From Ginglymostoma cirratum (lineage: Eukaryota): a DNA stretch of 64,000 bases. The position numbers and the translations under genes were made by a program. A model generated the notes under the pieces. The model saw only the letters and a program-made list of their open reading frames with translations, did no database searches and had not been told where the DNA came from. This document shows positions 14,773 to 62,956 of the stretch, piece by piece; position 1 is the stretch's first letter, and the number at the start of each line of letters is the position of its first letter. Location of the stretch: NCBI GenBank assembly GCA_024137785.1, contig JAHRHZ010000085.1, positions 3,513,770-3,577,769 on the forward strand, written 5' to 3'.

Positions 14773-16140
14773 TGTGTTTCCTATCGCTGCTGTCGGCATT
14801 TCAGCCAAAGTGAAACCGGATCTTAGACAGACAGCCGCGAGAGAGGTTCAGCATTTCTCATGCTATGTCCTTTCTCCTTTGAAATTGACCAGTCGAATGT
14901 TGCAGCTTACTGGTGGAAAGAAGGTAATAATAACTTTCAGCAGGAGGAAAGCAGAAAGTTATTCACTGTAGTTAGAGGAGCAGCCCGACCTTCAACTTCT
15001 GAATGTGACTGTGCGGGATGCTGGAACATATTACTGTGTCGTCAAGTATAAGCATCAAACGGTTGGGGAAAAAAACTGTTGTGCAACTTACTGGAGATGG
15101 TGTGACCACAGACAAACATGGTGTCTTAGCTACATTTGATATAAGTATTCAAATACTTTCAAATGAAATTATCAACAGTGTGAGAAACTCGGAGAAAACG
15201 CCAGGATAAAGATTACCATCTGCACTTCATCAGAAAATTGTGCTGAAATGTATCTATTGCAGAATAAGTTAAACTCTGAAGCCACCCATTTTTTCTTTCC
15301 TAATCTAAGCATCAGGACATAATTGAAAAGATACAGATATTACCTGCAGTATTGTACATTTTGAATATCAGGTTTGTAATTGAAAATAAAACTCCTGTCC
15401 CCATCATTTGGACTGTGGCTGTTGCAGTTTCTATGATCTCGAATCTAGTTCCTAACCGAGTGTTATGCGAAGGATACAGAACGACATCCCAAATGTATTT
15501 GCATTAATTATAATGCAAATTGTTGGAAACCAATTTTTGTGAACTTGGAAATGGTGCATCAATTGCTTTGGGGGTGCACGTGTTCGCAATATGTTAAGTG
15601 CAATATTTTTTCCAAGCATGTAATGAATTCTAATGCAGAAACCATGTCACGAACTTACAGATAGTTTGTTCATTAAATCATTGAAGCTTTGGAGTAGGAT
15701 TCTGATCTTTAGATTTCAATCAATTGTGTTATTGACAATGCAGATTCACCAACTCCCCTGAAAATTGTGCCAGCGCCTTGAGAAGACGCTTCATTCGTTC
15801 TGCAGTGCAGGACTTCTGCATTTTACCCAAAAGACATTAATTTTACTTGGCACAAAAGCAATACAAACGTCTTGGATAACAAGGTGTAGAGCTGGATGGA
15901 CAGAGGAAGCCAAGCAGCATCAGAGGAACAGGAAGGCTGAAGTTTCGGTACGAGACCCTTCTTCAGAAAGGCCTTTACTGGATTTAGAAATGAACAACAA
16001 GTAAACATCAACAGACTTTGAGGTTGTCAGCACCTTAGAGGTGCCAGAGGCAGTCGAATGTGACACAGTTTACACTTGTCAAGTGCATCACGTTTCAAGC
16101 TCATTTCCAGCAAATGTCAATTGCACTATTGAGAAAGAAG
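14773..16140 (+). pseudogene. V(J)-C1 IgSF pseudogene, copy A
   Basis: V exon 14773-15099 (ag|...|gt): MLCPFSFEIDQSNVAAYWWKEG...LQLLNVTVRDAGTYYCVVKYKHQTVG, frameshifted. C1 exon 15744-16140: LQCRTSAFYPKDINFTW...VYTCQVHHVSS, with an in-frame TGA, a PLE insert (~15874-15966) and a 2-bp deletion. Confidence 0.85.
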
Positions 16141-17106
16141 TGTGGGGGTGACCTTTCCCTTTCCATACAAAGTGACCTGTATCTGCTTGCACCAAAGTGG
16201 CCCATGGTTGAAAGGCACAAAATGGCCAATAAGGATTAAAACAAAATATGAAAACCTGCTCTAGTATTTAATTGAAACACACTGGTACCTTTGAACAAGA
16301 CAATCCCAAGGTCAGCAAAAGAACATTACCACCGACCATCCGAGACAGTTCTGCTGAGAAGGTGCCTAAGGATGGGTCGGTAACTAATCCCAGCCTCCAA
16401 TGTAAAGATGATGGTCGCAGTAAACAAATAAGACGAAGTGTGATTCTCAGCCCAAGAGTCGGCTAGAATGACTTCCTTTAATATCCTAAGTAGCTGCAAA
16501 AAGTGACAACTAAAGTTACTTCGTAGTAAATAGTCGCTTCTTTGGATGTACCTGCAATATTACATCGACCCGAGTTAAAAATTCCTTAATCACAGAAGTA
16601 GTTTTAACATACATTAAAAAGTATAATACAAGCATTAGAAGAACAATATTTAAATTTACATGTGAAATTTACTTAGCCTTTGATAATAATGTAATACACT
16701 AAATAATAGAACTTAAGTGATAAGATAACTGAGGCAGATCCGAAGGAGTGTAGCCAGTAGCTTTGGAATGTGAATGAATAGGATGTGTAGAAAGATCACA
16801 AGGCCTCGAAATTACAATGTCTGGTAAACGTCATAAGATCATGGGAACCTGGTGCTGTCCATTGGAATGACCATCATTGATTAGGTGTTCCACGGGACTG
16901 AGTGTATGGATAAAGGAGGAAGGACAGTGAGTACGCTATATTTGACAGTTGTAACAGAGCATGTGTAAAATGCTGTACTTTCACTGTAAAAATCAGAGTG
17001 TGTCATTGATCTCCCTTCTGATTCGGGAAGATTCTTTGGACCTGTCCCAGAATCAACTGGTTTTTGCTTGAATATACATCTTCCTGCCTGCCTCCTGACA
17101 CCAACA
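16141..17106 (+). mobile_element. LTR-like element abutting the C1 exon
   Basis: Begins TGT exactly where paralogues C and D have the GT donor, and ends ...ccaACA. TATA-like ggataaagg at ~16908. Homologue at 62957-64000. No TSD recognised. Confidence 0.5.
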
Positions 17107-18829
17107 TTTTAGCAAAAATGGTTTACATGGTTTGATGTCCTATTCACAGCCTTAAATACTGATTCACTCACTTTGTTTCCTGTAATTTCATGGTGAGCAA
17201 GTGTCGATACTTTACCCTAAGCCCCTTCTTTTTTAGCTGACATCAAATTGAAATAGCTGACGTCCAAACGCAGAACTTTGCTTTACCCCACCAGTTCGAA
17301 TCTAAAATGCCAAACATGACCCTTCTTTAAAAATCTGCTTTCAGTTTGTTGCCCATCAGCTAACTTTATACCCTCAGAGAATGAATTTACGCTCACAGTG
17401 CTCACTGATCTTACACGTGACACAGGAAGAAACACTATTAATGTTATAGAACATAAAACAATAAGATATTTGCAACTGAAAAATCACAAACAAATTTAGT
17501 TTAAAAACAACCAAGCTATGCTCATGATATGGCAATAATTTCATCCTGTACCCATTTGAGTACTATTAGCTCCTCATAAACTCCTTTGTGGAACTTTATG
17601 GTTTAGCTGTTTAAAATCCAAAACAATATGTGATTTCCCCCAATACTCCCTTTTTGATATTTTCACTTCCAGACAAGGAAATCAGCAGAGGTTCACATGA
17701 ACAGTCGAATTAGAAGCAATTGCAGGTCAGTCAGTTTCTCTAGCCTGCTCTGTTATTCTGCACATTCAATAAAATGACCAGTATGAGAAGGTAGTCCATT
17801 TGGGAGGCCAAATCAAAAAAGTTATTCAAATAAGGTCATCATGAATCTGACTGTAACCTCAAACCGACACTTAAACGGCACTGCTGATAATCTTTCACCT
17901 CTTTTCTCCATTGGAATCTAGCAACGTGGGACTTTAAAATATTCAAGAACATTGCTTCTGTTTACCTTTTAAGGAAGAGTGTTCCAATGACTCAGACTCT
18001 GTGATAGAAAAACTGTCTATCGCTGTTTTAAATGGCCAACCTCTGATTTTTTAAAAACCATGATCCCTAGTTCTAGGTTTTCCATGGAAGGAAACATCTC
18101 CACGTTTACCTTAATCAATCATTCAACCTGTTCCTGTTTGCAGCTGTCCAATCACTTCTGACAAGACAAACAGAATTTGTCATCATCTGTGTTGCCTCTA
18201 CCGAGGCACAACTTTCACAACTTTCCAAGCAGTCTTTCAAAATTCTTCAGACTGATAATTCATTTTTATGGTTTTGTACTTGTAAGCTTTTGATAGATCG
18301 GTAACAGAATGCATTCATGTTAGTCACAAATACACAATGAAGCAGCGTTGATAGATTAGATTCAATATTTTCCCGATTTATTGAGTCTGGAGAATTTTTC
18401 AAAATATTTTTGGTGAAGCATTCTACTTTATTTGGAAACTGTATCAGTTCTATGCCAATTTTGAGAATAGAATATACAAATGTATTGAAAGAATTGCTTA
18501 AGCATATATCAACACGATTTGTTCAAATGTAAATTGACTTTTTTTCTCTAATTTCATTTCCACATCAATAAAGAATACATTTTCATGTCCAGAAACATTC
18601 ATGAGTGATGTCATCTTGAGCTACGATACCATATTAAAATGAGAGTGCAATGCTAATCAATGGGGGAACAAGGATGGAGCATCAGACTGCACCGTCTTCG
18701 GCACAGTGCCACTTTACATTGAATTAAAATTTGAAGAAGAAACTTCCAATTATTAACATAAGCAAATTAACTAAGCAAAGTGAACCAAGAAATATGAGAC
18801 AGATTAGCAATTGAATCTCATTAGCTTTC

Positions 18830-18932: not shown

Positions 18933-19904
18933 CTGTGAGAAAGGACAGTTGAAAAAAAAAGGACAGTTAACTAACAGAAACCTGATAAACATTTGTCACA
19001 GTGAAGCCCATCATTTCCAGGTCAAAATGTAGAACTAGAGAAAGGGAAAGTAAATATCAACATTGCCCCGTGTTGCCAGTACAAGCAGAATTACGATGAA
19101 TATCTCCCGACGTACAAACACAGAGAAATACACTTAATAATAATCTTTCAGACTTTTATATCAAACTTCATGCAGATTTAAAGGGAATAAGGAGATCATT
19201 GAGAGTTGGAAATAATTGAATTGCGATCTTTCGTCGTACCTGTTGCATGAAATTCAAAGCTGAAATGAATTGGATACAGGTGACATGACTCTAAGGGAAG
19301 AGATTCATCCACATGTTTGCAAAATTATGATCGGGTTTATATGAGAAAAAATAACAGCTTAACATTAATAAGAAATGTTAACATCGCTGTGATACACTCT
19401 GCACTTCTATCTTTTAAGCATATTTTTGTTTTCCCAATTTAGTGGCTGCTTTTCACCGCTGCATACACTGGACATTATTCTTGGTGTTTGGGTTTCGATG
19501 ATGTACTGGAATCATTGAATTTCAGAGCAAGGGAAGTCGGCCTGCTGTCTGTCATGCAGTGTTTTGTCAGAAAAAACAACATTCAGACTGAATTACCTTT
19601 CATTTAAATCATTCTCGATGAAAATTACACAAAGATGGCTTAATGGCTTCTCAAAATCAACTCATTCTCATGAATGAACTTATTATATACTTATACGACC
19701 TTAAATATACCTCTATAGATTGTGATTTCTTTCTGTTGTTTTGACATTCTGCCATCCTCAGAACCAACTTGATCAAGAGCAGCATATTGCAGCTGATCCT
19801 CAGACAACTCTCGTTTTCTCTCGAAAGCCAAGATTTAATATAATTTCGTTATTTTATTTTGGAGTAAAGAGACAAGTGTACGTTCTTAACATGAACAATT
19901 AGTT

Positions 19905-20097
19905 TGTTGTACTGAAAACAACAAATGCTGGAGACGAAAGCGGGTCACGCAACTCCAATGGAGAGAGAGAGCAAGCTAATGTTTCCAGACTAGATGACTC
20001 TTCATCACAGCTCTAGGAGCTTGCTCTCTATCCATGGATGCTGGCTGACACCCTGTGATCTCCAGCATTTGTTGTTTCCGTACAGATTCCAGCATCA
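19905..20097. mobile_element. PLE-derived hairpin insertion
   Basis: aacaaatgctggaga...gcaagct is mirrored by agcttgc...tctccagcatttgtt. Same family as 12927-13152. Confidence 0.75.
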
Positions 20098-21019
20098 AAA
20101 CAGTAAAATAAAGGTGTTGAAGTGTGAAGTGAAGACAAAGGTACAACGCACTGTCAAAGGATTTGCAAGGTATGGGTAATGCCAGACAAGATGTTTAAAG
20201 TAAATTATTGATGTTTTAAGTCAGAAAATATGTCAACTGTTCAGGGAGGAATATGGTCAGGTGAGTGACAATGTAAAAATGTCACTTTTGTCGGAAAAGT
20301 AAGACACCATATTTCTGTGTTCTGATATGGACTCTTTGGTCTTCTGTGAAGCATTTCTCAATCATAGATAGTTTTGTTTAATCATTCCATCTGATCCATT
20401 GCTCATAAAACACTAAAACACAGGCGAGGCATTGCACCTGAACATCAGAGGACTTTATTCTGTTACCTGCAACAGCATCAGCTGCAACAGTTTACAGAAA
20501 CACGTGCAGTGATGGGGTAAAGAGTTTGAAGTAATTTTCTGAAGACCTCCAGGAAAGAATATAATTTTTGCAGCACCTGGAATGAGTGGGTCTATTCTGC
20601 CCGACGTACTATTTTTAATAGGATGTGAGCCTCAGTGGCAAGACCAATATTTGACGCCAATAATCGTTTACTATTAACAGTCCAGAAACACAGCAGCTTT
20701 CTTGACTCAATGCAGTCCAACATTGTTGTCACGGAGGGAGTTGCACGCACCAGGTGTAATGAAAGATGAGGGTAATTTTTGGAGTATTGTACTCAAGGAA
20801 GGAGAATGATTGTTTCAAAAACATCAAATTTAGATCCAAGACCGAATCTGAGATAATAAATGAGCTCAGTTGAGAGAAAGGCTTTAACTGCTTTAAAATG
20901 TATTTAAAGACATTAAATCTGCTTGCCTGCACGACATTCAAGCGTCGTCATGCATAAATATATGTAATTACGTTGTGTCCTCTGTCGTGGCCAACCAAAG
21001 AGTTCAAATTTTACTAAAC

Positions 21020-21370
21020 TATTATCAGTTATTCCTGGATAAGTGCTACGTGCTCCTTTTCAGGTGCCACAGATAGGGATGTGCCTCTCGTGTGTCACAG
21101 ATATCTACATGTTGAAAATTAAAAATGAGAGAGGTTTGCAGCACAACAGCTCGTCTATTTGTTTTCCAAGATGGCATGGTGTTGGCACGTTACACGATGC
21201 AGAGAGACAGCCAACAGTAAAAGCTTTCTCAGGAAGCCAACCTGTGCAAACTGTTGTTTGGCAGAAGTCAGACATAATCACCGAACTCAGACTAATGCTG
21301 AGTGAATTTTGAACAGTGTAAAAAGGAAGGAGGGAATAATCATCTCTATTTGCACCTGGAAACCTACCAT
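21020..21370 (-). pseudogene. Possible decayed Ig V-type exon
   Basis: TVQNS...DFCQ, FYCW and LSFLI/FQHVDICDT occur in V-domain order across frameshifts. Confidence 0.3.
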
Positions 21371-21644
21371 TCAAAACAGACATCATACCAATGTAATCAA
21401 CGTTGATTTTCATGTCTATAACCAATATGGCAAAATTATTCAGCACACTGTCACTTGTTAAATGCGAATGAAAACAAAAATCAAAGATATTTCACACCTA
21501 TGTTTGATGATTTAAAACAGTTTCAACAGTTCATGAAACTTCCTTCCACTTTCGATTTTCTTTATTGTGATTTCTTTCAGCTGATGTTGTGTTTTTGAGA
21601 GCTGATGAAATGATCAACACTCACCTTGACATGTTAGAAATATA

Positions 21645-22467
21645 GGGGTTAACAAGCATAGGGCTGGATGAACACAGCAGGTCAAGCAGCATCATCGGAG
21701 CAGGAAAACTTGACGTTTCGGTCCTAAACCCTTCATCAGAAATTGGGTAGGGGAAGAGGGTTCTGAAATAAATAGGGAGAGAGGGGGAGGCGGATAGAAG
21801 ATAGATAGAGGAGAGGATAGGTGGAGAGGAGGCAGACAAGTCGAAGAGGCGGGGATGGAGCCAGTAAAGGTGAGTGCAGGTAGGGGGGTAGGGAGGAGAT
21901 AGGTCAGTCCAGGGAGGACGGACAGGCCAAGGGGGCGGGATGATGTTAGTGGATAGGAGATGGGGGTGTGGCTTGAGGTGAGAGGAAAAACAGGTTAGGG
22001 AGGTGGAGATGAGCTGGGCTGGTTTTGGGATGCGGTTGGGGGAGGGGAGGTTTTGAAGCTTGTGAAATCCACATTGATGCCATTGGGCTGCAGGGTTCCC
22101 AGACTGAATATGATTTGCTGTTCCTGAAGCCTTCGGGTGGCATCACTGTGGCATTGCAGGAGGCCAAGGATGGACATGTCATCAGAGGAATGGGAGGGGG
22201 AGTTGAAATGGTTCGCGACTGGGAGGTGCAGTTGTCTGCTTCCTCTCCACCTATCCTCTCCTCTATCCATCTTCTATCCGCCTCCCCCTCTCTCCCTATT
22301 TATTTCAGAACCCTCTTCCCCTACCCCATTTCTGATGAAGGGTTTAGGACCGAAACGTCAAGTTTTCCTGCTCCTATGATGCTGCTTGACCTGCCGTGTT
22401 CATCCAGCCCCATGCTTGTTATCTCGGATTTTCCAGCATCTGCAGTACCTTTTATCTCTTATCTATT
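21645..22467. mobile_element. Young PLE (Neptune-type) palindromic insertion with hammerhead motifs
   Basis: The left arm (-) carries the 3' end of the GIY-YIG ORF (QLHLPVANHFNSPSHS...LQEQQIIFSLGTLQPNGIN). The right arm (+) starts at ~22236. TSD tagaaatata (21635-21644, 22468-22477). Confidence 0.9.
22328..22363 (+). ncRNA. Minimal type I hammerhead ribozyme motif (mirror copy at 21708-21743, -)
   Basis: AUUU-CUGAUGA-A-GGGUUUAGGACC-GAAA-C-GUC-AAGU: conserved core boxes, stem II, GUC cleavage triplet, and a 4-bp stem I (AUUU/AAGU). Confidence 0.7.
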
Positions 22468-22991
22468 TTAGAAATATATATTTGTGTTCCCAGCTTAAAT
22501 TGTTCAAGTAGACTTGAAAATTAAAATAATGAGAATGAAGGAAATTTGCCTCACCTCATATTCACACTGGGTTCGATTTATTGATGTTTTCTTTCCCCCA
22601 TCTGAGAAATAAAAATGGTATCAGTCAGCAACAAAAAAAAAGGCTGATATTTGTACTCATCGGCAAACCAAAGAAACCAAAAACAATTCGACCGCTAATC
22701 AATATTTATAAAGAGGGTACAATCGGAAGAACTGTTTCGCAATAAAGCTCAAAATGTTACACACAGATGCTTTGAATTTATGTTTTCAGGATTGAAGCTA
22801 CAGAAACTGCTGCCAGCAATGATTTTCATCAATACAATTTTGACCGACTCTGATACAGTTCACGAAGTGAAACTTCAAATATTGTTGTTTTATATTTGAT
22901 GTGAAGCAATGTCTATATTTGAAAGATGTTTCACATAAAATATTTGTTTAAATTGTCCAGTTCAGAACTTCAGTTCCCAATTATGTTAATT

Positions 22992-23134
22992 TCAGACAGA
23001 CATTTCTATCCTGTTCATATCTTTGGAGATAAAGAACAGAAAACCCTTGGCAATCATCACGGTCAATATCAGATTTGTAAGTGCACGAGCAGCACAACAG
23101 GCAACCATAGTAACACTGCTTTTAGAGGCAAAAT
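22992..23134 (-). pseudogene. Orphan TM/cytoplasmic exon of the V-C1-TM family (copy B)
   Basis: Reads FASKSSVTMVACCAARALTNLILTVMIAKGFLFFISKDMNRIEMSV*. Homologous to 52761-52951, and flanking 22.62-22.99 kb aligns with 52.47-52.8 kb. Acceptor mutated (cag>caa). Confidence 0.6.
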
Positions 23135-23689
23135 TTGTAATGTTAATATAAATTCAAAATTAGGAATTGCAACAGAAACTGAAAATGCACAGGTTTAAAT
23201 GTCACGTCTGTCATTTTCAATTGTACTGCCTTACACATGTGATAAATATAGTCCATAAAGTCACAGCATTTCAATTCTCTTGTCTCATTGTTCAACTGAT
23301 CCGTTTGCAGCCAGAAGCAAAATGTCTGGAACTTAGAGAAATGGGTAAATGACAAAAGTACCTCAACTAATAGCACATTTAAAATTAATGCGGAAATAGT
23401 GCTAATTGCACGAAGCATTCAGTTCTCTCAGCTATGTGGCAAAATACTAAATTGTTTGTTGGGAATTTAATTGAATTGCAGACAGATTGTTGTCTGAAAA
23501 AGTATATAATGGAACCTGCCGTCAGATTTGCTTGAGTTTTCTGTGGAGGCAAACTTCAGTTGAAATAATTTGAATCTCTCTGCAGCTACGACCCAATCAG
23601 TTATGACTCTGTGTTGAGTATTGAATCAAGTATTTAGCATTCTGACGAATTGGGGAAATAAACTGGAGCTACTGTATGTGTGGATATAT

Positions 23690-25945: not shown

Positions 25946-26074
25946 CTGAGCAAAATGTGGAAGGAAATGAAGGATACTTTGGCTGTGGAAGCATACTGCG
26001 TCCTGGTATGGTCCTGTAATAATTGGTTTCGTTGTTTCGTCACCGGTTGACTGTGGCATGACCATTTTGTTTTG

Positions 26075-27750
26075 GGAAAGGGATAAGGAGCAGAATCCCA
26101 ATGGAATACTTTGTGCCATGAAGGGCTGTCTGGGGGAAGTAGGTTTCCCAAACTAAACCAAGGGCATCACACATATGGAGTGGATCCTGCTGAGCGGCCG
26201 CTCGTATACTGTCCCGGGAGGTGCGAGATTTAAAGGAGGCGAATGGGACATTGACCGCTGCGCTGGCGAGGTCGGCTCGGACCGCTCAGGAAAGCACAGA
26301 TAAAGCCGAGTAGAAGCATACGAGTACAGCCTGCAACAAAAACAAAAAGTAGTGGGAATCACAGCGGGTCAGGCAACTTCCATGGAGAGAGAGCAAGTTA
26401 ACGTTTCAGGGCGAGACGACTCTTCATCAGAGCTGATGAAGCCTGGAGGGGGCAGCATTTATACAATGGCGGGGTGGGGTGGTGGGGGGCAGTGCTGGGG
26501 GAGAAAGGATGTTGACAGATCAGATTAAGTGATCGGAATGTGAGAAGGGCAGAACAATGGTGTGTCTAACTGCTGGACGAGTCAGAACAGAGAGTCAAAC
26601 TGTATAACCTGCAAATTGGCCACATTGCAGCACAAAAAAAAAACAAACTGGAAAGTAGATCCAGCGGAAGTGTCCTTTTTATTAACTTCAGTTGATCGGG
26701 TCCCCGATCACTGGGAAGATATTCGTCTGATTTGGAGTACGAGGGGACTGATGGGGAAGGAGTCTCTAATGGTGATAATGTTCCCCTTTGCGCGCCCGTT
26801 AGTAACTTATACAGCTAAGGGGCACGGCCAGCAGGCCTCCCAAAGAATCCTTGCATTGCGCGGGATTACCCACTGACAGAATTGCAGGATTTGGGGAATA
26901 ATTTTCCGTCAGAAAGCAGGGCACTGGGAGCTTGGATAACCCGGCTGTGGGACTCCCAGGCGTCTAATATTTCTCTCAAAAATAGGGAGCCTTGTCTACA
27001 TGCACAGCCACACATAATGCTCTCCATGGAGCACAGGAACAGGAGCATTCACTGCATATATACGCATAGCATTGAGACCGAAGTACCTGGACCATTCATG
27101 GATTGGGAGAAGGAAGCTGTCCCGTGGCGTACAATATCACAGGGAAGTGCCCGATTCCGGAGTGAGCTACACAAACGGGATTGGACATGAACAATTTCCA
27201 GTGATGGACCAAGAAGCTTTCACAACCCCAATGAGAATCCAGCTTATGCACAATGGACCAATTCATCTCAGAGTGACGCTGCTGGCAATGTTGGGGCGGG
27301 CTCAGGGCAGACCAGACGGTGATGTTGTAATGTTGTTTGGACAGTTAGTGGATGCGGATTTGCGCCAAGCTCATGCCGGAGAGCGGTAACAGGGAAACGC
27401 AGGAAAGGATGGGAAGCAAGCGAAGAAAGTCAGCAAAATCAGATGTTTACTGCTTTATGGGAAGCAGGCACAGTCTGAAATAGACAGAAAATGCATGGTA
27501 TCACCATCAGTGTTATATGTTCCTTCTGGAAGAAACGATTTGAAAATCCAGTAAGGGACCAAGGGGGACATCAATTCCTCCCATAGTGTGAGACACCAAT
27601 GCGGATTTAGATGCCACTTCCCAGAAAAAAAGGAGGATACACCAGAGTCCCTTCTGTACTCCACATGAGAGGAACTGCAGCAGATCTGTAGAGTCTGTAA
27701 TCCCCGAGAATCGGAAGGTGGCCGGGACATTGAGATGTGCCAAAAAGGGG
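26075..27750 (+). pseudogene. gag: Class III ERV gag remnant
   Basis: ELQDLGNNF...GAWITRLWDSQASNISL..E resembles the ERV-L gag motif WILRVWD.G..NI.L...E. Interrupted by a PLE fragment at ~26338-26605. Confidence 0.7.
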
Positions 27751-31329: not shown

Positions 31330-32939
31330 TCCAGTGATTGAATTTAACGCTGAATGTATCTTCGGAAATGAATTGCAACATTGTGTATTTTCTTAATATA
31401 TTTGGGACCTCTCAATGACGAACTTTTGGCAGCAACTCTCCTGACAACATAGTACACACGTGCGGAAAAAGCTGAAGAAAGGAAACCTTTAACTATGCAA
31501 CAATGTCAAATTTCGGGATTGGCACAATCAGAGGCAAATGACTGTCGTAATCACTTTCTACTTCGTCAACCTCTTTAAATGATGTCTCAAAGTTTAACGT
31601 GCAACGTTTTGTAGAATATTACCTTCTTTCGGAACAGTGCAACTGGCATTTACTGGAAATGAGCTCGAAAAGTGATATATTTGACACATGTAGACTGTGT
31701 CACTTTCGGGTATATCTGGCACGTCCAAGGAGCTGACCACTTCATAAAGACCCTCGCCTTCTGCCTGTTGTACATTTCTAAATCCAGTGAAGATTTGTGT
31801 ACTGTTTCTGTGTCAAGTAAGGTTAAAGTCTTCTGGATAAAAGCCAGATGTCCTGCGTTGCAGCATGAAAGGAGGAGATGAAGGATCTTCGGAACGTATC
31901 AACACAATGTTTAGGGTAGATGGTGAAGCTGCATTATAAATAAAATTCACATAAATATGGACATTGTACTTCTGTCCCACAACTTAAACAACTTCATGAA
32001 CTAATCAATTGTTACTTCTGAGTCCGGCAGCTGCATTGATCATCATTATTTATATTGGTAGGGATTGCTATTACTTTTATTATGTAGCGACCTCCTAATG
32101 CAATTGAGATATCACCTGTCTCAGCAAAATTGGAAACTACTTTCTGTCCATGTTACTTAATAAAAATATGTTTGAGTTTTCATAAAGTACACTTCTCGCA
32201 ATCAGGGGTTTGGGAACTGGATCACTGAAATTGAGACAGCCACATTCCAAACGAGGGGTAAAGGAAAATGGCTTTTCAAAGTTCAACATAAAATGACATT
32301 TAAAGTGCCTAATATTGCCGATAAACTCAAGACAATACATTTTGTTACTCCATGCTTAAATTGTAAAAAATGCTTCACTTGGAAGTCTTGCATTAGCTTT
32401 CTATACAACACAAATTTCAATACCATATGCCGATAGTGTGCAATTGCTGAAGCGTGCAGTGTCGCTGGTGATGCTTTCTTTTTTATCACATTACTGAACA
32501 TGTCGTTCCTAAGAAGTAAACGATTTTATATCGGCCTCCACCACATATATATGTATATTTTTAAGAAAATGCAACTGCTAACTCGCATTCACTGTTCACT
32601 GGAACCAAGACTTAACGTTTCCTGGGATGACACTAACCGTAGACAACAAGTTGAGAAGCTTGTTTCTCAGAAACCCTTTGTTGCTGAGTTTTGGCTCTAC
32701 AGTAATATGTTCCAGCGTCCAGGACAGTCACTTTGAAGAGATGGAGGTAGGCTCTGCGTTCCAGTGCTGTAAAGTCTTTTTTTTGTGCTGTCCTCCTTCA
32801 GAAGCATGTTCTCATTACCTTCTTGCCAGCAGAAAACCTTAATGTTTGAACGGTTGAGCTCGAATGAGAAAAAGACATCGCAGGATAGCTGTTGTATTTA
32901 TCGGGGCCTTTATTTTCATAACATCCAGATTAACGTTGT
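31330..32939 (-). pseudogene. V(J)-C1-TM IgSF pseudogene, copy C (best preserved)
   Basis: V exon 32939-32638 (302 nt, ag|..|gttagt, two +1 shifts in homopolymers): TAILRC...VFCWQEG...AYLHLFKVTVLDAGTYYCRAK...QLVVY. C1 exon 31928-31623 (306 nt, phase 1-1): LQRRTSGFYPEDFNLT*HRN...GLYEVVSSLDV...VYMCQIYH, with Cys>Arg and Trp>TGA. Next exon acceptor at 31471. Confidence 0.9.
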
Positions 32940-33782
32940 CTGAAGTGCAGAGAGCTACTGTTAACAAAAGATTCATACAATGAGTAAACAGGGAAGATGA
33001 AATGCAACTTGAAATAACATAATTAATTCAATACACTCACAGAGTAATAATTCACCATGTCTTGCTCTTTGAATTCTGCATCACTATCTGAATATCTACC
33101 CGAACTGAACTATTGCAAATTGTTTTTTCACTTATCCGGAGGATTTTTAGGGCAAGGAACTCTGCCGTGAGAAACTTAGGAAAAGGAGTGTCCGATTATC
33201 CATCAAATATAAGTTAAATTATTCTTCCACCTCGATCAAGAACGTTTCAAACACAGAAAGAAGGAGCATGTACCTGGATACGAAATGCACAGAAAATATA
33301 AGTTCCACAGTTATCCACTCACAAACATAGCGACAAAGAAAATCTGGCAGAACATACATTGGATGTAAAAAGAGACCTGTTGAAAGTTTTTTGGAACATC
33401 AGTTATGCATTGATTTTAATCACTTGCGTCTAAATGAAGTCAATAAGCACGCAACTAATTCCTCGCCAAATGCGCAACATGCATGTGTTTTCAAATAAGA
33501 CCTTGTTGTGGCAACAGTGAGCGGAAATGATAACACGGACAGACAACTGCAGTTACAGCAAAATATATCCTGAGATAGTGAAACTACTGTTCGAGTCTGT
33601 ATCCACCCACATGACCCACCAGGCTTGGGTGCGATATCGGCTGCACCAATACAAAACTCCATCCTTTAATTTTTTACCCATGTCCACATAATTGTAACAT
33701 ACTTCCTTTGAGAACATTTTTCTCAGAATTTCAGTTCAGCCACAGGATACAACTGAGGCCATTTCAAAGAAAACACATGTTT

Positions 33783-34300: not shown

Positions 34301-34866
34301 TCTCAGAGATAAAAGGTACTGCAGATGCTGGAGAATCCGAGATAACAAGCATGGGGCTGCATGAACACAGCAGGTCAAGCAGCANNNNNNNNNNNNNNNN
34401 NNNNNNNNNNNNNNNNNNNNNNNNNNNNNNNNNNNNNNNNNNNNNNNNNNNNNNNNNNNNNNNNNNNNNNNNNNNNNNNNNNNNNNNNNNNNNNNNNNNN
34501 NNNNNNNNNNNNNNNNNNNNNNNNNNNNNNNNNNNNNNNNNNNNNNNNNNNNNNNNNNNNNNNNNNNNNNNNNNNNNNNNNNNNNNNNNNNNNNNNNNNN
34601 NNNNNNNNNNNNNNNNNNNNNNNNNNNNNNNNNNNNNNNNNNNNNNNNNNNNNNNNNNNNNNNNNNNNNNNNNNNNNNNNNNNNNNNNNNNNNNNNNNNN
34701 NNNNNNNNNNNNNNNNNNNNNNNNNNNNNNNNNNNNNNNNNNNNNNNNNNNNNNNNNNNNNNNNNNNNNNNNNNNNNNNNNNNNGGGGTTTAGGCCCGAA
34801 ACGTCAAGTTTTCCTGCTCCTATGTTGCTGCTTGACCTGCTGTGTTCATCTAGCCCCATGCTTGTT
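34301..34866. mobile_element. Young PLE palindromic insertion containing the assembly gap
   Basis: Both gap flanks are opposite-facing ends of the 21.6/59.2 kb family. Perfect 15-bp TSD atcaggttatagtcg (34286-34300, 34867-34881). Confidence 0.85.
34385..34784. other. Assembly gap (400 N)
   Basis: Run of N. Confidence 1.
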
Positions 34867-44775: not shown

Positions 44776-44779
44776 GGGC

Positions 44780-46193: not shown

Positions 46194-46195
46194 AA

Positions 46196-47788: not shown

Positions 47789-48240
47789 GATAACAAGGTG
47801 TAGAGCTGAATGAACAGAGCAGGCCACCCAGTGTCGGAGGAGCAGGAAGGCTGACGTTTCGGGCCAAGACCCTTCTTCAGAAATGGGGGAGGGGAAGCGG
47901 GTTCTGAAATAAATAGGGAGAGATGGGGAGGTGGATAGAAGATGGGTAGAGGAGAAAAAGGTGGAGAGGAGACAGACAGGTCAAAGAGGCTGTCTCTTCT
48001 CCACCGATCTTCTCCTCGATCCATCTTATATCCGCCTCCTCCGCTCTCCCTATTTATGTCAGAACCCCTTCACCACCTCCCCCCCGCATTTCTGAAGAAG
48101 GGTCTCGGCCCGAAACGTCAGCCTTCCTGCTCCTCTGACGCTGCTTGGCCTGCTGTGTTAATTTAATTCTACACCTCGTTATCTCAGATTCTCCAGCACC
48201 TGCAGTTCCTACTATCTCTGAAACAATTTTAGCCCCACAG
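47789..48240. mobile_element. PLE palindromic insertion with hammerhead motifs
   Basis: Inverted arms meet near 47990. TSD agatgaccatgg (47777-47788, 48241-48252). CUGAAGA-A-GGGUCUCGGCCC-GAAACGUC at 48092-48119. Confidence 0.9.
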
Positions 48241-52760: not shown

Positions 52761-54260
52761 TTATGATTCCTCATGTGAAATTTCCTCAACACGTGCGTGG
52801 AAATTACTTCTTTTAACTTGGATATTACCAGTCATATCATTGGAGAAAATGAATGGAAACACTTTTACAATCTTCGTGGCGAGCAGTACAATTGGAAGCA
52901 CGACAGGGACATATTCAAAAACCTGAACAGCGTTGATTTTTGAGGCAAAAGCTGTAAATTGGTGTAAAAGCACAAACCAGAAATAAATATTTTTGAATGT
53001 CATATATCTGAATAGACTGTTTTTTGAATATTGTTTGTCATAGTCATAGAGTTATACCTTCTTTCGCAATAGTGTAACTGACATTTGCTAGAAATGAGCT
53101 TGAAACGTGGTGCAGTTGACAAGTGTAAACTGTGTCACATTCGACTGCCTCTGACACCTCTAAGGTGCTGATAACCTCAAAGTCCGTTGGTATTTACTTT
53201 TTGTTCATTTCTAAATCCGGTCAAGACTTTTGTATCATCGTTGTGCCAAGTAAAATTTAAATCTTTTGAGTAAGAGGCAGAAGTTCTGCACTGTGGAATG
53301 AAAGAAATGCCTTCCAATGGTACTGGCAGAAGCTGCATTGTATATAATATAATTCAGATAAATGTAAATGTCAGAATCCAATTCCAAAACTTGAACGATT
53401 CAATTAACAAACCATCTGCAGTTTCAGGGCAAGGTTTTTGCATCAGTCATCATGATTTGCTAGGCGTAAATATTACGTTTATCATAGTGATGCGTACTTC
53501 CCCTCCCCAACCCAAAGTAATTGATGCACCATTTCCAAGTTCAGCAAAATTGGATTCTAACTTAAATACGCATTAATTATTACAAATATATTTGGGACGT
53601 CATTTTGCATCCTTCTCGTGACAACCAGTTTGGAACTGGATTCTGGATTGTAGAAACTGCTGAAGCCGCGGTCCAAATGAGGGGGACAGGAATTATATTT
53701 TCAATGAGATACCGGGATATTCAAAGATACTATTTGGATCTCTTCAAATTGGTTCCCGATGCTGAGATTAGAAAAGAAAAATGGATAGCTTCAAAGTTTG
53801 GTATCAACTTACTCTGCAATAGATACATTTCAGTACAATATTCTAATTAACTGCAAATGGTAATCCTCACACTGAAGGAGTTCCTAAAATGTTTTCAGAT
53901 TGATGCCAATTTCATTCTAAAGAAGTTGAATACTCGTGGGAAACATATATATTTAGGAAAATGAATTTTAACCATCATCGTTGTTTTTTTTAGCAGCTGA
54001 GACACCATGTTTGTCAATCACACCATCTCCAGTAAGTTGCACAGCAGCTTCTTTCCTAGCCGTTCGATGCTGATATTTGACGACAGAGGAATGTGTTCCA
54101 GCGACCCGGACAGTCACATTCAGAAGGTTCAGGTCGGCTGCTCCGCTAATTGCAGTGAATAACTTTCTGCTATCCTCCTGCAGAAAGGGATTATTAAAAT
54201 CTCTCCACCAGTAAGTGACAATATTTGAATGGTTGATTTCGAAGGAGAAAGGACACAGCA
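52761..54260 (-). pseudogene. V(J)-C1-TM IgSF pseudogene, copy D (inverted duplicate)
   Basis: V remnant 54260-54024: LCPFSFEINHSNIVTYWW...LNLLNVTVRVAGTHSSVVKY, 5' end deleted and 2nd Cys lost. C1 exon 53332-53058 (ag|..|gtataa). Phase-compatible TM exon 52951-52761: AFASKINAVQVFEYVPVVLPIVLLATKIVKVFPFIF...*. Confidence 0.85.
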
Positions 54261-54702
54261 GGAGAAGAAAGTGGGGCACAATTAATACCCTCTGACTCTT
54301 ATAGGACTGAATGGACTGAGCAAGAGTTTCGGAGAAGCCTGTCTGAAATCCCCTTCCTCATTACTTTTCAAAATCATGTCTTTGACTCTGAGATAATATT
54401 TGAGCTCTCTGTGACTCTTCTGTGTCGCCCTTTCTTCCCCATAACTCCCACTGAAGATATTATGTCTGTTTGACTCATCCAGTATAGTTAATTATTAGTT
54501 GGTATAGATTTGACTTTCGTTATCTTTGTACCCAGCCAATAACTGTTGTCAAAGACGGTAACCAGGCAACAACATTTATGTGAACAAGAAATGCTGGAGA
54601 TCACAGCAGGTCAGTCTGCATCCATGGAGAGAAAGCAAATTAATGTCTCGAGTCTAGATGACACTCCATCAGCTCAGAGCTTCTGAATAGTCATATAGAC
54701 TC
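53058..54702 (-). repeat. Inverted partial copy of the duplication unit (= 13045-16140 with an internal deletion)
   Basis: 54265-54702 is the reverse complement of ~13045-13478, joined directly to the equivalent of 14860 onward. Confidence 0.9.
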
Positions 54703-55157: not shown

Positions 55158-55194
55158 CTGAAGGAACAAAACAAAAACATGTTTTTTTTTTGAT

Positions 55195-57693: not shown

Positions 57694-57910
57694 ATAACAA
57701 TGTGTACAGCTGGATAGACACAGCAGGCCAAGCAGCATCAGAGGAGCAGGAAAGCTGACGTTTCGGGCCTCACAGATTAATCTGAAGAAGGGTCTCGGCC
57801 AGAAACGTCAGCATTCCTCCTCCTCTGATGCTGATTGAAATGCTGTGTTCATCCAGCTCTCCATCTTGTTATCTCTGATTGTCCAGCAACTGCAGTTCCG
57901 ACTATTTCTG
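57694..57910. mobile_element. PLE hairpin insertion specific to unit E
   Basis: TSD atatcttcagtg (57682-57693, 57911-57922). Empty site at ~13273 and ~54450. Confidence 0.85.
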
Positions 57911-59233: not shown

Positions 59234-61449
59234 TTGTATCAGAGATAAAAGGTACTGCAGATGCTGGAGAATCCGAGATAACAAGAATGGGGCTGGATGA
59301 ACACAGCAGGTCAAGCAGCATCAGAGGAGCAGGAAAACTTGACGTTTCGAGCCTAAACCCTTCATCAGAAATAGGGGAGGGGAAAAGGGTTCTGAAATAA
59401 ATAGGGAGAGATGGCGAGGCGGATAGAGGATGGATAGAGGAGAGGATAGGTGGAGAGGAGGCAGACAAGTAGAAGCGGCGGGGATGGAGCCAGTAAAGGT
59501 GAGTGTCGGTAGGGGGATAGGGAGGAGAAAGGTCAGTCCAGGGAGGACGGACAGGTCAAGGGGGAGGAATGATGTTAGTAGATAGGAGATGGGGGTGTGG
59601 CTTGAGGTGACAGGAAAAACAGGTTAGGGAGGTGGAGATGAGCTGGGCTGGTTTTGGGATGCGGTTGGGGGAGGGGAGATTTTGAAGCTTGTGAAATCCA
59701 CATTGATGCCATTGGGCTGCAGGGTTCCCAGGCTGAATATGATTTGCTGTTCCTGCAGCCTTCGGGTGGCATTACTGTGGCATTGCAGGAGGCCCAGGAT
59801 GGACATGTCATCTGAGGAATGGGAGGGGGAGTTGAAATGGTTCACGACTGGGAGGTGCAGTTGTTTCTTGAGAACTGAGCGCAGGTGTTCTGCAAAGCAG
59901 TCTCCAAGCCTCCGCTTGGTTTCCCCGATGTAGAGGAAGCCACAACGCGTACAGCGGATGTAGTATACCACATTGACAGATGTGCAAGTGATCATCTGCC
60001 TGATGTGGAAATCGTCTTGTGGCCTGGGATTGGGATGAGGGAGGAGGTGTGGGGGCAGGTGTAGCACTTCCTGCGGTTACAAGGAAAAGTGCAAGGGTGT
60101 GGTGGGGCTGGAGGGGAGAGTGGAGCGGACAAGGAAGTTGCGGAGGGAGTGGTCCCTCCGGAAGGCAGATAAGGGTGGGGTGGGAAAAATGTCTTTGGTG
60201 GTGGGGTCTGATTGCAGATGGCGGAAGTGTCGGAGGATGATGCGTTGGATCCGGAGTTTGGTGGGGTGGTATGTCATTCCACTCCCGTACATCTCAAATG
60301 TCCTCATTCTTCAACGACCGCAACTCTCCCCCACAGTGGACGAGAATGCCCTCGACCGTGTCTCCCGCATTTCCCGGAACACATCCCTCACGCCCCGTCC
60401 CCGCAATAATAACCAAAAAAGAATCCCCCTCGTCCTCACATACCACCCCACCAACCTCCGGATCCAACGCATCATCCTCCGACACTTCCGCCATCTGCAA
60501 TCAGACCCCACCACCAAAGTCATTTTTCCCTCCCCACCCTTATCTGCCTTCCGGAGGGACCACTCCCTCTGCGACTCCCTTGTCCGCTCCACACTCCCCT
60601 CCAGCCCCACCACACCCAGCACTTTTCCTTGTAATGCAGGAAATGCTACACTTGCCCCCACACCTCCTCCTTTCACCCCAATCCCAGGCCCCAAGAAGAC
60701 TTTCCACATCAGGCAGATGATCACTTGCACATCTGTCAATGTGGTATACTACATCCGCTGTACGCGTTGTGGCTTCCTCTACATCGGGGAAACCAAGCGG
60801 AGGCTTGGGGACCGCTTTGCAGAACACCTGCGCTCAGTTCGCAAGAAACAACTGCACCTCCCAGTCGTGAACCATTTCAACTCCCCCTCCCATTCCTCAG
60901 ATGACATGTCCATCCGGGGCCTCCTGCAATGCCACAGTGATGCCACCCGAAGGCTGCAGGAACAGCAAATCATATTCAGCCTGGGAACCCTGCAGCCCAA
61001 TGGCATCAATGTGGATTTCACAAGCTTCAAAATCTCCCCTCCCCCAAACGTATCCCAAAACCAGTCCAGCTCATCTCCACCTCCCTTACCTGTTTTTCCT
61101 CTCACCTATCCCCTCCTCCCACCTCAAGCCACACCCCCATCTCCTATCTACTAACATCATCCCGCCCCCTTGACCTGTCGTCCTCCCTGGACTGACCTAT
61201 GTCCTCCCTACCCCCCTACCTACACTCACCTTTACTAGCTCCATCCCCGCCTCTTTGACTTGTCTGCCTCCTCTCCACCTATCCTCTCCTCTATCAATCC
61301 TCTATCCGCCTCCCCCTCTCTCCCTATTTATTTCAGAACCCTCTTCCCCTCCCCCATTTCTGATGAAGGGTTTAGGCCCGAAACCTCAATTTTTCCTGCT
61401 CCAATGATGCTGCTTGACCTGCTGTGTTCATCCAGCCCCATGCTTGTTT
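59234..61449. mobile_element. Young Neptune-type PLE as a ~2.2-kb palindrome (GIY-YIG endonuclease 3' half in both arms)
   Basis: Left arm (-) runs to 60273 and right arm (+) starts at 60274. NVVYYIRCTRCGFLYIGETKRRLGDRFAEH is a GIY-YIG motif, with Cys-rich linker CNRRKCYTC. TSD tgcggacactta (59222-59233, 61450-61461). Empty site at ~14555. Confidence 0.95.
59337..59372 (-). ncRNA. Minimal type I hammerhead ribozyme motif
   Basis: AUUU-CUGAUGA-A-GGGUUUAGGCUC-GAAACGUC-AAGU has an intact core, stem II and stem I. The mirror copy at 61356-61391 has GUC>CUC. Confidence 0.75.
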
Positions 61450-61672
61450 TGCGGACACTTAATTGTGTTTTCTTTTTTGTGCTTTATGTGCATGTAAAGT
61501 ATTCACAGAGCTCATTTGCTGCTGTGTTAGGGCGGAGAAAATATGACATTCAATGAGGACAGTAGTTTAAAAATTGTAGAAATAGTCAATTCGGCAGCGT
61601 AAATTGCTATTGCATCAATTACCTGGAACAAGGATGTTATTTGGACAAACCATCGTTCTTCTTTAATCCCAG

Positions 61673-62956
61673 TGTGTTTGCTTGGTTGATAGTTGCTGTG
61701 GCATTTCGGCCAAAGTGAAACCGGACCTTAGATGAATAACCGCACAGAGAGGTTCATCAGTTCTCATGCTATGTCCTTTCTCCTTTAAAATTGACCATTC
61801 AAATGTTGTCGCTTACTGGTGGAGAGAAGGTAGTAACAGCTTTCTGCAAGAGGACAGCAGAAAGTTACTCACTGTAGTTAGAGGAGCAGCCTATCTTCAT
61901 CTTCTGAATGTGACTGTCTGGGATGATGGAACATATTGCTGTGTTGTCCATTGTCAACATTAAACAGTTGGGAAAGAAACTGCTGTGCAACTTAATGGAT
62001 ATGGTATGTGTGACAGCAGACAAACATGGTGTCTTTGTTGCACTTGACATAAAACTTCAACTTCTTTAAAATGAAATTATCAACAGTGTAAGAAACTTGT
62101 AGAAACTGCCACAGTGTAAAAATTGCCATCTGCACTTGATTAGAAAATTATATTGAAATGTATCTTGCGCAGAATAGGTTAATACCAAATTTCGAAGCCA
62201 CCTATTTTTCTTTTCTAATCTAAGCATCGGGAAACAGTTTGAAAAGAGACAGATATTACCTACAGTATTGTAGATTTTGAATATCTGGTATCTAATTAAA
62301 ACTAAAATTTCTGTCCCCATCGTTTGGACTGTGGCTGTCGCAGTTTCTGTGATTGAGAATCCAGTTCCACACTGGTTGTTTTGAGAAGCATGCAGAATGA
62401 CATCCCAAATATATTTGTAATAATTTATATGTATATTGTTAAGATTAATTTTATTGAACTTGGAAACGGTGCATCAATCACTTTGTGGGGGTGCAGGGCG
62501 GTTGCCATATGTTAAATGTAATATTTTCTCGAAGCAAGTAATGGCTGCTACAGCAGAAACCGTGCCACGAGCTGACAGATAGTTTGTTCATTAATTCATT
62601 GAATCTCTGGAGTAGGATTCTAATGTTTAGATTTATCTCAGTTGTGTGATTGAGAATGCAGCTTCACCAGCTCCCCTGAAAATTATGCCAGTACTGTGAG
62701 AAGACGCTTCTTCAATTCTGCAGTGCAGGACTTCTGCCTTTTACCCAAAAGACTGAATCTTACTTGGTACAAAACAATACAAAAGTCTTGACTGGATTTA
62801 GAAATCAACAACAAGTAAACACCAACGGACTTCATGAGGCTGTCAGCACCTTAGAGGTGTCAGAGGCAGACGAATGTGACACAGTTTACACTTGTCAAGT
62901 GCATCACATGTCAAGCTCATTTCCAGGAAATGTCAGTTACACTATTGCAAAAGAAG
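61673..62956 (+). pseudogene. V(J)-C1 IgSF pseudogene, copy E
   Basis: V exon 61673-62003 (|gtatgt): ITAQRGSSVLMLCPFSFKIDHSNVVAYWWREG...AYLHLLNVTVWDDGTYCCVVHCQH*TVGKETAVQL. C1 exon 62662-62956: LQCRTSAFYPKD...W...VYTCQVHHMSS, with TGA and frameshifts. Confidence 0.85.

Follow-up and report, generated by a model that had tools for sequence, protein, structure and literature searches.

The 64-kb stretch of Ginglymostoma cirratum DNA analysed here (the window) carries several paralogous pairs of V and C1 exons, which raises the question of whether it harbours working antigen-receptor-like genes, relics of a pre-RAG receptor lineage or members of some other immune gene family. Our results show that it consists of decayed gene-family debris and conceals no working receptor. 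We consider it about 85% probable that the window is the decayed part of a tandem birth-and-death cluster, formed by a multigene family of paired immune receptors in elasmobranchs.

Organization of the window

The window contains four broken V+C1 copies, with A and E on the plus strand and C and D on the minus strand, as well as the 3' remnant of a fifth copy (B'). The four pairs described in the first-pass annotation were recovered at the same loci by self-BLASTN, in which A and E were 82% identical, intron included, and A and D 71% identical, with A and C alignable in their exons only. A family HMM, applied to six-frame pieces, detected V in all four copies (E, 2.8e-31; D, 1.8e-25; A, 6.3e-17; C, 5.6e-15) and a single C1 exon with each of them (C, 3.8e-23; E, 1e-20; A, 4.3e-15; D, 4.6e-14). 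Stop-free window pieces scored 29.1 bits with the Pfam V-set model (cut-off 26), and half-domain pieces scored 18.9 and 16.8 bits with the C1-set model (PF07654), their partial length keeping them below the gathering cut-off of 21. Every V and C1 motif quoted in the first-pass annotation is present in the window copies, and its C1 exon borders, all of them phase 1, agree with those given below. The true V exon starts lie about 18 nt upstream of the proposed ones, as a spliced contig shows for copy C (32957, not 32939).

In the four V+C1 copies, the G strand is encoded within the V exon and followed by a GT donor. As claimed earlier, there is no heptamer or nonamer near the V ends, with no CAC-type heptamer from 40 nt before to 80 nt after any of them. 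Given the lack of an RSS and of a separate J segment, and the position of the G strand inside the V exon, a rearranging antigen receptor (IgL, TCR) was rejected; there is no rearrangement because V is encoded with its own G strand. The G strands of the window copies read VGKKTVVQL, VGKETAVQL, ARKEAAVQL and VSEKQASQL and do not match the J consensus (F/W)GxGTxLxV.

An assembly gap of 400 N (34385..34784) separates copies C and D. It is part of no copy and adjoins no exon, the nearest family feature being the leader-like exon of C, with the gap 1327 nt upstream of it, and the ORFs listed across it are artefacts of N. The gap affects only how A/B'/C and D/E are ordered with respect to each other. 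No flanking single-copy genes were found in the 64-kb window.

Lesions in copies A, E and D

Each V and C1 exon of the four copies is disrupted, in line with the earlier description. The V exon pseudogene of copy A (14787..15099, plus strand), matched by the HMM on two frames (6.3e-17 and 6.1e-12), has two internal frameshifts, near 14837 and 14986; a third shift was called by DP outside the exon, upstream at 14769-70. Its start was placed by homology to the RNA-supported acceptor of C, which leaves it with CG instead of AG as the acceptor dinucleotide; a GT donor is found at 15100. The C1 exon pseudogene of A (15744..16140, plus strand) contains a TGA at 15779-15781 and is interrupted by a 102-nt insertion (15875-15976), a short repeat with many matches in the window. 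A frameshift called at 16007 corresponds, by DNA alignment, to a 2-nt deletion common to D, and the donor GT is gone (AAG/TGTGGG).

The V exon pseudogene of copy E (61693..62003, plus strand; start by homology) lies in a single frame with a TGA at 61733-61735 and a TAA at 61961-61963 and has a 1-nt deletion among the leader-end codons. Its C1 exon pseudogene (62662..62956, plus strand) shows a TGA at 62697-62699, in the same codon as that of A, 1-nt deletions at 62754 and 62774 and, as in copy A, loss of the donor GT.

In copy D, the V exon pseudogene (54024..54270, minus strand) is 5'-truncated, its first ~20 codons having been replaced by a stretch also present at 13383-13637 and 58020-58115, and its second Cys is missing (YYC to HSS). 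The C1 exon pseudogene (53058..53332, minus strand) retains its GT donor, lacks 20 nt at its 5' end and carries the 2-nt deletion common to A. Of the TM exons assigned earlier to both C and D, the one in D (52829..52951, minus strand) is confirmed by canonical AG acceptor and GT donor sites (phase 1-1) and by homology of its peptide, FASKINAV...IVKVFPFIFSNDMTG, to the family TM exon (FASKI...IVK; 37% to P0165/P0002). The proposed TM exon of C (~31470-31400) encodes a charged, non-TM peptide, and contigs run unspliced across it. A family HMM scan found no tail exon 3' of the TM exon of D.

Copy C and its transcript

The V exon pseudogene of copy C (32638..32957, minus strand) has two +1 frameshifts, at 32871 and 32774. 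Its acceptor is defined by a spliced joint (33041 to 32957) across an 83-nt GT..AG intron; the TTTCAG motif considered as the acceptor for 32939 is coding sequence (..ISA/TSD..), as the spliced contig indicates. Upstream lies a leader-like exon remnant (33041..33058, minus strand); its ATG is at 33058, and 33041 is followed by a gtgagt donor. Splicing joins this remnant to V, yet out of frame, giving six codons and then a TAG. The C1 exon pseudogene (31623..31928, minus strand; 78-81% identity to zebra-shark P0162) keeps to one frame, with a TGG-to-TGA change at 31815-31813 and its first Cys replaced by Arg. Its donor at 31623 is in use, since one contig joins it to 26329, in a cryptic exon (26000..26330, minus strand; 3' limit nominal). 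At its loose end, contig X1#2 matches 26300-26329 at 30/30 positions; a polypyrimidine tract and AG precede this segment, and the reading frame entered at 26329 stops after 14 codons.

The contigs of runs X1-X3 include the joints of leader to V and of C1 to 26329, as well as expressed paralogues of ~90% identity; the latter have TGG where copy C has TGA and show C1 spliced to a 'DFASKISVAV' TM exon. We took these runs, which may stem from the assembled animal itself, as cDNA solely on account of contig breaks at exon borders, and the contigs from the C locus itself end short of spanning its stop codon. With the runs read as cDNA, copy C is transcribed and aberrantly spliced. Its transcript would thus combine an out-of-frame leader with a C1 exon joined to a cryptic, stop-terminated exon.

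A fifth copy, B'

Copy B' (19442..23135, minus strand), absent from the first-pass annotation, is 5'-truncated and comprises a TM exon (23135-23022) and two tail exons (19819-19712 and 19570-19442), with no V or C1. The TM exon is 76% identical to zebra-shark P0165, and its splice sites are degenerate (acceptor AA, donor GA). Both LQYAAL and ITIY persist in tail exon 1 (66% identity to P0161). Tail exon 2 contains a TAA stop, shows Ser for Tyr in the third motif and has PVYAAV as the fourth. No V or C1 was detected by the family HMM between 23138 and 31600. The exons of B' are of the A/D/E lineage type rather than that of C, which favours a separate copy over a displaced 3' end of C.

Intact relatives and kinship of the window copies

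A profile built from the window V pieces had Heterodontus XP_067905931 as its top match (3.7e-33), followed by other elasmobranch proteins; the top matches, from 3.7e-33 to 1e-21, are members of an elasmobranch SIRP-like group, to which individual window pieces show 45-81% identity. RefSeq lists intact members, with leader, V, one C1 and TM, from at least 15 elasmobranch species, including sharks and rays, and intact relatives reach 30-54 bits (V-set) and 34-48 bits (C1-set) in Pfam. Contrary to the earlier suggestion, the family is thus not hidden from annotation. Its automatic names are inconsistent (SIRP-alpha-like, SIRP-beta-like, B7-H6-like, tapasin-related-like, Ig-lambda-like and 'NCR3 ligand 1-like'), with SIRP ('PTPNS1-like') the commonest. 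The label 'unnamed' is justified, as our literature search returned no paper describing this elasmobranch V-C1 family. The broader claim of non-rearranging V+C1(+TM) genes from an expanded cartilaginous-fish family, with all window copies dead, is well supported.

In the family alignment, P0001, P0160, P0162, P0034, P0039 and P0052 have ITIM-type tails, and P0003, P0164, P0166 and P0055 are short-tailed forms with an Arg in the TM segment. By motif, SIRP-type ITIM pairs are thus present in this alignment and in the tail exons of B', and basic-TM partners in the alignment. Basal members carry the canonical J motif GxGTxLxV (GSGTKLTV or GTGTQLTV), which has decayed in the window copies and their sub-lineage. 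The V domain is short: the AlphaFold model of P0001 lacks a C'' strand, and P0001 scores higher with the Pfam 'ig' than with the V-set model. The window copies match the exon plan of the family, with a leader, V and C1 exons in phase 1, a TM exon starting from (D)FASKI and tail exons with tyrosine motifs. Stops, frameshifts and lost Cys residues or splice sites in their V, C1 and tail exons leave no ORF capable of encoding a receptor. With V and C1 each closest to the elasmobranch SIRP-like V-C1 paired-receptor group, and nested within it in the tree, the window copies are pseudogene members of that group.

The tree united copy C with Stegostoma P0162 (support 100/100), identifying zebra-shark LOC125459911 as its sister, and grouped A, D and E (100/99) next to two zebra-shark SIRP-like genes, Stegostoma P0161+P0165 (95/90). 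Intron K2P distances are 0.21 for A-E, 0.30 for A-D and ~0.63 to C. Because their exons are less diverged than their introns, the copies were probably under constraint for a time after duplication. No one simple tree accounts for the lesions common to pairs (the TGA in A-E, the 2-nt deletion in A-D), which suggests gene conversion or parallel hits.

Alternative explanations

It is highly unlikely, in our estimation, that the window genes are relics of the pre-RAG receptor lineage (UrIg/UrIg2/PRARP-type VJ-C1), possibly linked to the MHC. They do share with UrIg and UrIg2 the elasmobranch host, a non-rearranging V exon with its own G strand and without RSS, followed by C1-type sequence, a genuine C1-set domain in the intact relatives, as well as the GxGTxLxV motif of basal family members, and UrIg2 is one of the top sequence matches in the PDB (92 bits with the profile, 62 bits with P0001). 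However, that score adds up several C domains, and SIRP-alpha, IgL, B7-H6 and TCR-beta fall in the same range; moreover, the J motif is decayed in the window sub-lineage, and no MHC or AgRC marker was seen in the scanned part of the window. UrIg and UrIg2 combine VJ with several C domains, nine in the case of nurse shark UrIg2 (PMC12227049), dimerize in an antibody-like manner and show linkage to the MHC or the IgH/TCR complex (Flajnik et al., 2023; PMC12227049). Membership would imply VJ and at least three C-domain exons, whereas the window copies and their relatives show one C1 followed by TM, ITIM-type or charged-TM endings, tandem expansion and many dead copies.

That the family comprises B7-H6 (NCR3LG1)-type or other B7/butyrophilin-type ligands instead of SIRP-like receptors is very improbable. 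Several members are named 'NCR3 ligand 1-like' in RefSeq, B7-H6 scores 65 bits against the family profile, and the AlphaFold ectodomain of P0001, with its V and C1-like domains in a predicted extended geometry, superposes best on B7-H6 (TM 0.70-0.72, rmsd 3.1-3.4 A) and ICOS-L. Yet the Foldseek E-values are flat (~1e-13) over B7, IgL and BTN, so that the fold does not discriminate, and sequence similarity to B7 proteins is no higher than that to IgL or TCR. Paired ITIM-tail and Arg-TM forms and a J-like G strand are receptor features, whereas B7 proteins act as ligands and have no activating/inhibitory pairs, and their V domains are not known to carry a J-like motif. It is barely credible, finally, that any window copy works and that its apparent lesions are assembly errors. 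Both V-exon frameshifts of C lie in homopolymer runs, its C1 exon is in a single frame, and the copy is transcribed and spliced, but a separate short-read contig spanning 32831-32957 matches the assembly exactly, the shift at 32871 included. Copy C has further defects in a stop created by substitution, the loss of a canonical Cys, a leader of six codons that is out of frame, and the stop-containing cryptic exon, while A, D and E each combine several kinds of lesion, including the 102-nt insertion, the 20-nt deletion and lost splice sites.

A probable decayed cluster of paired receptors

We favour the reading of a decayed paired-receptor cluster. Intact family members consist of a split leader, a short V with its own G strand, one C1-set domain and a TM segment, followed by one of two endings. 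One is a cytoplasmic tail whose tyrosine motifs comprise two of LTYAAL type and two of xVYAx type; judging by these motifs and by the example of SIRP-alpha and other ITIM receptors, members of this form may be inhibitory and recruit SHP-type phosphatases. The other has an Arg within the TM segment, before a short tail, a motif suggestive of an activating form acting via an acidic adaptor. The window preserves two old lineages, one comprising C and the other A/D/E and the 3' remnant B', inactivated through premature stops and frameshifts, loss of cysteines and of splice sites, repeat insertion or truncation; because every copy has been inactivated, none can make a receptor. To the observed anatomy, lesions, kinship and transcription, this scheme would add signalling and ligand-driven turnover.

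Pseudogenes such as these are ordinary in themselves; their family may be the distinct thing. It is tempting to speculate, though we hold this only tentatively, that the family is an undescribed, elasmobranch-wide, Mb-scale V(J)-C1 receptor system with ITIM/Arg-TM pairing, the cartilaginous-fish counterpart of KIR/LILR/NITR with an antigen-receptor-like V-C1 scaffold as its base. If so, clusters such as that in the window would form a dated record of its birth-and-death turnover.

Comparison with known receptor systems

With the full-length family profile, the best non-elasmobranch match is mammalian SIRP-alpha (114 bits), which again argues against B7-type ligands. Since the ectodomain alone is about equally similar to IgL, UrIg2, SIRP and B7-H6, membership in any named family is not shown, but the single C1, the TM segment, the ITIM-like or Arg-TM endings and the best match to SIRP-alpha together indicate that these are SIRP-like paired receptors and not antibody-like genes of the UrIg type. 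Like SIRPs, its members have an N-terminal V with its own J-like G strand ahead of C1-set sequence, putative inhibitory tails with four tyrosines in alternating LTYAxL and xxYAxx motifs, and activating-type forms with a basic TM residue and a short tail; d3, TM and tail of SIRP-alpha align collinearly with C1, TM and tail of the family. However, identity is just 22-30%, the V domain is shorter and predicted to lack the C'' strand, and SIRP-beta has a TM Lys in place of the Arg near the outer leaflet. SIRPs sensu stricto, moreover, have a V and two C1-set domains, in contrast to the single C1 of the relatives and window copies. The family could be sister to SIRP, or it could have branched off independently from the VJ-C1 stock behind Ig/TCR, UrIg and SIRP. 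Its genomic behaviour resembles that of mammalian KIR/LILR and teleost NITR, with tandem birth-and-death clusters, ITIM and charged-TM members and many pseudogenes, and teleost NITR13 is itself a weak match of the family profile (65 bits). However, KIR/LILR are built from C2/I-type domains and NITR from V or V-I, whereas a C1-set domain distinguishes the elasmobranch family.

Anatomy of the window copies

The window (64 kb, G+C content 42%) carries the decayed remains of part of a SIRP-like V-C1 paired-receptor family of elasmobranchs, which is annotated but has yet to be characterised, a feature that is real and was well observed in the first-pass annotation, which over-read it. In self-BLASTN within the window, copy A matched three more loci, bearing out the proposal of four paralogous pairs of V and C1 exons (copies A and E on the forward and C and D on the reverse strand). 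Copy E resembles copy A at 82% over 1.3 kb, intron included, copy D at 71% over 1.1 kb, and the similarity of copy C to A is confined to the exons. No additional V or C1 exons were found within the window by tBLASTN with its own V and C1 pieces. DNA alignments, by which exon borders were set, agree in all four copies with the C1 borders previously proposed (A, 15744-16140, +; E, 62662-62956, +; D, 53332-53058, -; C, 31928-31623, -), each exon being in phase 1. The V exons end at 15099 (A), 62003 (E), 54024 (D) and 32638 (C), with a GT donor directly after each, and the stretch from 40 nt before to 80 nt after all four ends lacks a heptamer-like CAC motif, which upholds the claim that no recombination signal follows any V.

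Intact relatives in sharks and rays

Stop-free window pieces reached 29.1 bits against the Pfam V-set model (cut-off 26). Their C1-set scores, 18.9 and 16.8 bits, remained below the cut-off of 21 because the pieces are half-domains. In a MAFFT alignment of the C1 half-domain pieces, first halves were placed onto second halves, and the alignment was discarded. Comparison of single pieces with the PDB by phmmer returned generic Ig matches alone, with a titin I-set domain for V and, all weakly, IgCH1, TAPBPR and class II beta for C1. The window copies entered the searches as exon pieces rather than as a spliced or joined model, and for the large search, a profile of the window V pieces alone was run against 1.84 billion representatives. 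The best match was Heterodontus francisci XP_067905931 (3.7e-33), followed by XP_067905013, a Chiloscyllium protein and then more elasmobranch proteins. The intact relatives that the first-pass annotation had proposed to seek were thus found in many sharks and rays, and the family is not hidden, since intact members already stand in genome annotation.

In these relatives, a leader precedes a V domain (30-54 bits against V-set), which is followed by a single C1-set domain (34-48 bits) and a transmembrane (TM) segment. The proteins then end in one of two ways, with tyrosines of the LTYAAL and xVYAx types in the tail (P0001, P0160, P0162, P0034, P0039 and P0052) or with an arginine in the TM segment and a short tail (P0003, P0164, P0166 and P0055). 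The named matches are without exception sharks or rays (Heterodontus, Stegostoma, Hemiscyllium, Chiloscyllium, Rhincodon, Heptranchias, Scyliorhinus, Mustelus, Cetorhinus, Carcharodon, Pristis, Hemitrygon, Hypanus, Mobula and Narcine). Their automatic RefSeq names contradict one another, ranging from 'tyrosine-protein phosphatase non-receptor type substrate 1-like' (SIRP-alpha-like) and 'signal-regulatory protein beta-1-like' to 'NCR3 ligand 1-like', 'tapasin-related protein-like', 'immunoglobulin lambda-1 light chain-like', 'class II beta chain-like' and 'uncharacterized'. A literature search, whose coverage excludes subscription journals, found no paper on the family.

Downstream exons and a fifth copy

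A comparison of the regions downstream of C1 at the DNA level and by tblastx found no TM exon common to the copies, and a global alignment of these regions in copies D and C was unconvincing; TM and tail exons became detectable only with intact relatives as queries. With these, tBLASTN identified three more minus-strand exons, namely a TM exon at 23135-23022 (76% to P0165), whose splice sites read AA and GA, a tail exon at 19819-19712 (LQYAAL...ITIY; 66% to P0161) and a tail exon at 19570-19442, which has a TAA stop and a serine in place of the third tyrosine. Since all three resemble the A/D/E lineage in type and the family HMM finds no V or C1 exon between them and copy C, we read them as probably a separate fifth, 5'-truncated copy (B') and not as the 3' end of copy C. 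Of the TM exons proposed earlier, that of copy D (52951-52829) retains both splice sites and shows homology to the TM exon of the family. The one assigned to copy C encodes AFSARVYYVVRRVAAKSSSLR, which is not a TM segment, and 151-nt contigs pass through it unspliced.

An assembly gap (400 N, 34385-34784) separates copies C and D, 1327 nt upstream of the leader-like exon of copy C. It touches no exon or alignment used here, and the scaffold join determines nothing beyond how A/B'/C are ordered and oriented relative to D/E; ORFs across it are artefacts of N. The window ORFs that we scanned contained mobile-element domains or had no match, and no MHC marker that would bear on the suggested MHC linkage was among them. 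Between copies C and D, a minus-strand ORF run at 41659-45533 with an integrase core (1.4e-10), RNase H (4.4e-13) and RT-RNaseH (6.1e-12) represents a decayed LTR-retroelement or retrovirus-like pol, and upstream of copy E, a 351-aa ORF (60099-61151, +) with a GIY-YIG nuclease domain (23.5 bits) fits a Penelope-like element. Minus-strand segments at 2536-2747 and 4438-4562 show 55-73% identity to residues 1-108 of zebra-shark P0161, an unusual N-terminal extension of this RefSeq model. The extension is probably repeat-derived sequence that does not belong in the model; alternatively, it is an upstream element conserved in the family. Neither the family HMM nor tBLASTN with family proteins gave a V or C1 match at 1150-3296; V-like exons there, if real, would belong to another family or have decayed beyond detection.

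Disruption of the exons

Frameshift-aware alignment to the nearest intact proteins, combined with DNA alignments, located lesions in each V and C1 exon of copies A, C, D and E, as the first reading had held. In copy A, the V exon has two frameshifts, near 14837 and 14986, and CG in place of the acceptor AG, with a third shift called at 14769-70, just upstream. Its C1 exon is interrupted by a TGA (15779-81) and, at 15875-15976, by a 102-nt repeat insertion; it also has a 2-nt deletion and has lost its donor. The V exon of copy E is interrupted within one frame by both TGA and TAA, and a single nucleotide is missing among the leader-end codons; its C1 exon has a TGA at the codon also hit in A, 1-nt deletions at two sites and no remaining donor. 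Copy D has a repeat in place of the V 5' end and lacks the second V cysteine, and its C1 exon shows a 20-nt deletion and the 2-nt deletion also present in A; two compensating shifts called in its V 3' end are regarded as an artefact of the frameshift-aware alignment, as the plain frame reads through. Copy C has two +1 shifts in V, both in homopolymers, and TGG-to-TGA and Cys-to-Arg changes in C1.

A SINE- or MITE-like repeat of ~95-130 nt occurs at about a dozen places in the window (9888-10018, 14203-14406, 21647-21742, 22329-22423, 47788-47884, 48086-48223, 57693-57873, 58867-59373, 61356-61436 among them), often as close inverted pairs, and its copy at 15875-15976 is the insertion splitting the C1 exon of copy A. 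The sequence replacing the V 5' end of copy D (54285-54357) recurs at 13383-13637 and 58020-58115 and is therefore a repeat; it reads through into the V exon without a stop, which could misdirect annotation based on ORFs.

Probable transcripts of copy C

Parts of copy C are present in three small sequencing runs from a single study, whose kind is not on record and which we read as cDNA because their contigs break at exon borders. Over 32831-32957, one contig agrees exactly with the window, and it then extends to 33041 across an 83-nt GT..AG intron. This joint sets the V acceptor at 32957, the earlier placement being incorrect. The homopolymer frameshift at 32871 recurs in this contig, and the frame of the leader-like exon (ATG at 33058) does not match V. 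Another contig, of 446 nt, has one difference over the C1 exon and joins the C1 donor at 31623 to letters identical to 26300-26329, a cryptic exon with a stop after 14 codons. Several further contigs, ~90% identical to the C1 exon, represent expressed paralogues in which the TGA of copy C (31813) is TGG and C1 is joined by splicing to a TM exon that starts with DFASKISVAV. A 57-nt contig from run X3, joining 32638 to 31856 with seven extra letters, was judged unreliable and set aside.

Placement and turnover of the copies

The C1 exon of copy C is 78-81% identical to zebra-shark P0162 (LOC125459911), and the closest relatives of A, D and E are P0161, P0165, P0163 and P0170. In a maximum-likelihood tree, in which broken copies were entered as rows joined with X at every break, copy C is sister to P0162 (support 100/100), and A, D and E form one clade (100/99) that is sister to P0161 and P0165 (95/90). 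These pairings with zebra-shark genes indicate that both window lineages predate the split from the zebra-shark lineage, with A, D and E arising later. K2P distances in the V-C1 intron amount to 0.21 for A-E, 0.30-0.31 for A-D and E-D and ~0.63 to C. Among A, D and E, the C1 exons differ by 0.11-0.16, about half of the intron divergence (0.21-0.31), which suggests a period of constraint or function after duplication, or gene conversion. The TGA common to A and E and the 2-nt deletion common to A and D likewise hint at gene conversion or parallel hits.

Discussion

By itself, the locus matters little: its contribution is five dead copies of a family already visible in annotation. It serves as a pointer, showing that most of the family's history is missed by ORF-based views and revealing two sub-lineages that predate the zebra-shark split, together with contradictory RefSeq naming. 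The diversification of V-C1 receptors around the origin of adaptive immunity is a question to which curated work on the entire family would be relevant.

Among known families in the PDB, the scores of intact members against IgL, UrIg2, Ig-mu and SIRP-alpha differ by a few bits. The family profile scored 92 bits for UrIg2, a sum over several C domains, 84 for SIRP-alpha, 71 for SIRP-gamma, 65-72 for IgL and 65 each for B7-H6 and TCR-beta. The UrIg-type reading of the copies fails on architecture (PMC12227049). In the large protein collection, among the best 8000 candidates by shared words, the top non-elasmobranch match was rodent SIRP-alpha (114 bits), followed by a frog Ig-like protein (71) and carp NITR (65). 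In the AlphaFold model of P0001 (ectodomain pLDDT ~90), the V domain lacks a C'' strand and is followed by a C1 domain and a TM helix; with this model, Foldseek found ICOS-L, B7-H6, IgL and BTN equally near, providing no discrimination. The C1 domain, TM segment and tail of the family are collinear with d3, TM segment and tail of SIRP-alpha at 22-30% identity. From the sequence, collinearity and model comparisons, we infer that the family would act like SIRP or another paired-receptor family. With one C1 domain, whereas SIRP proper has two, it may be called SIRP-like, a designation that stops short of placing it in SIRP proper.
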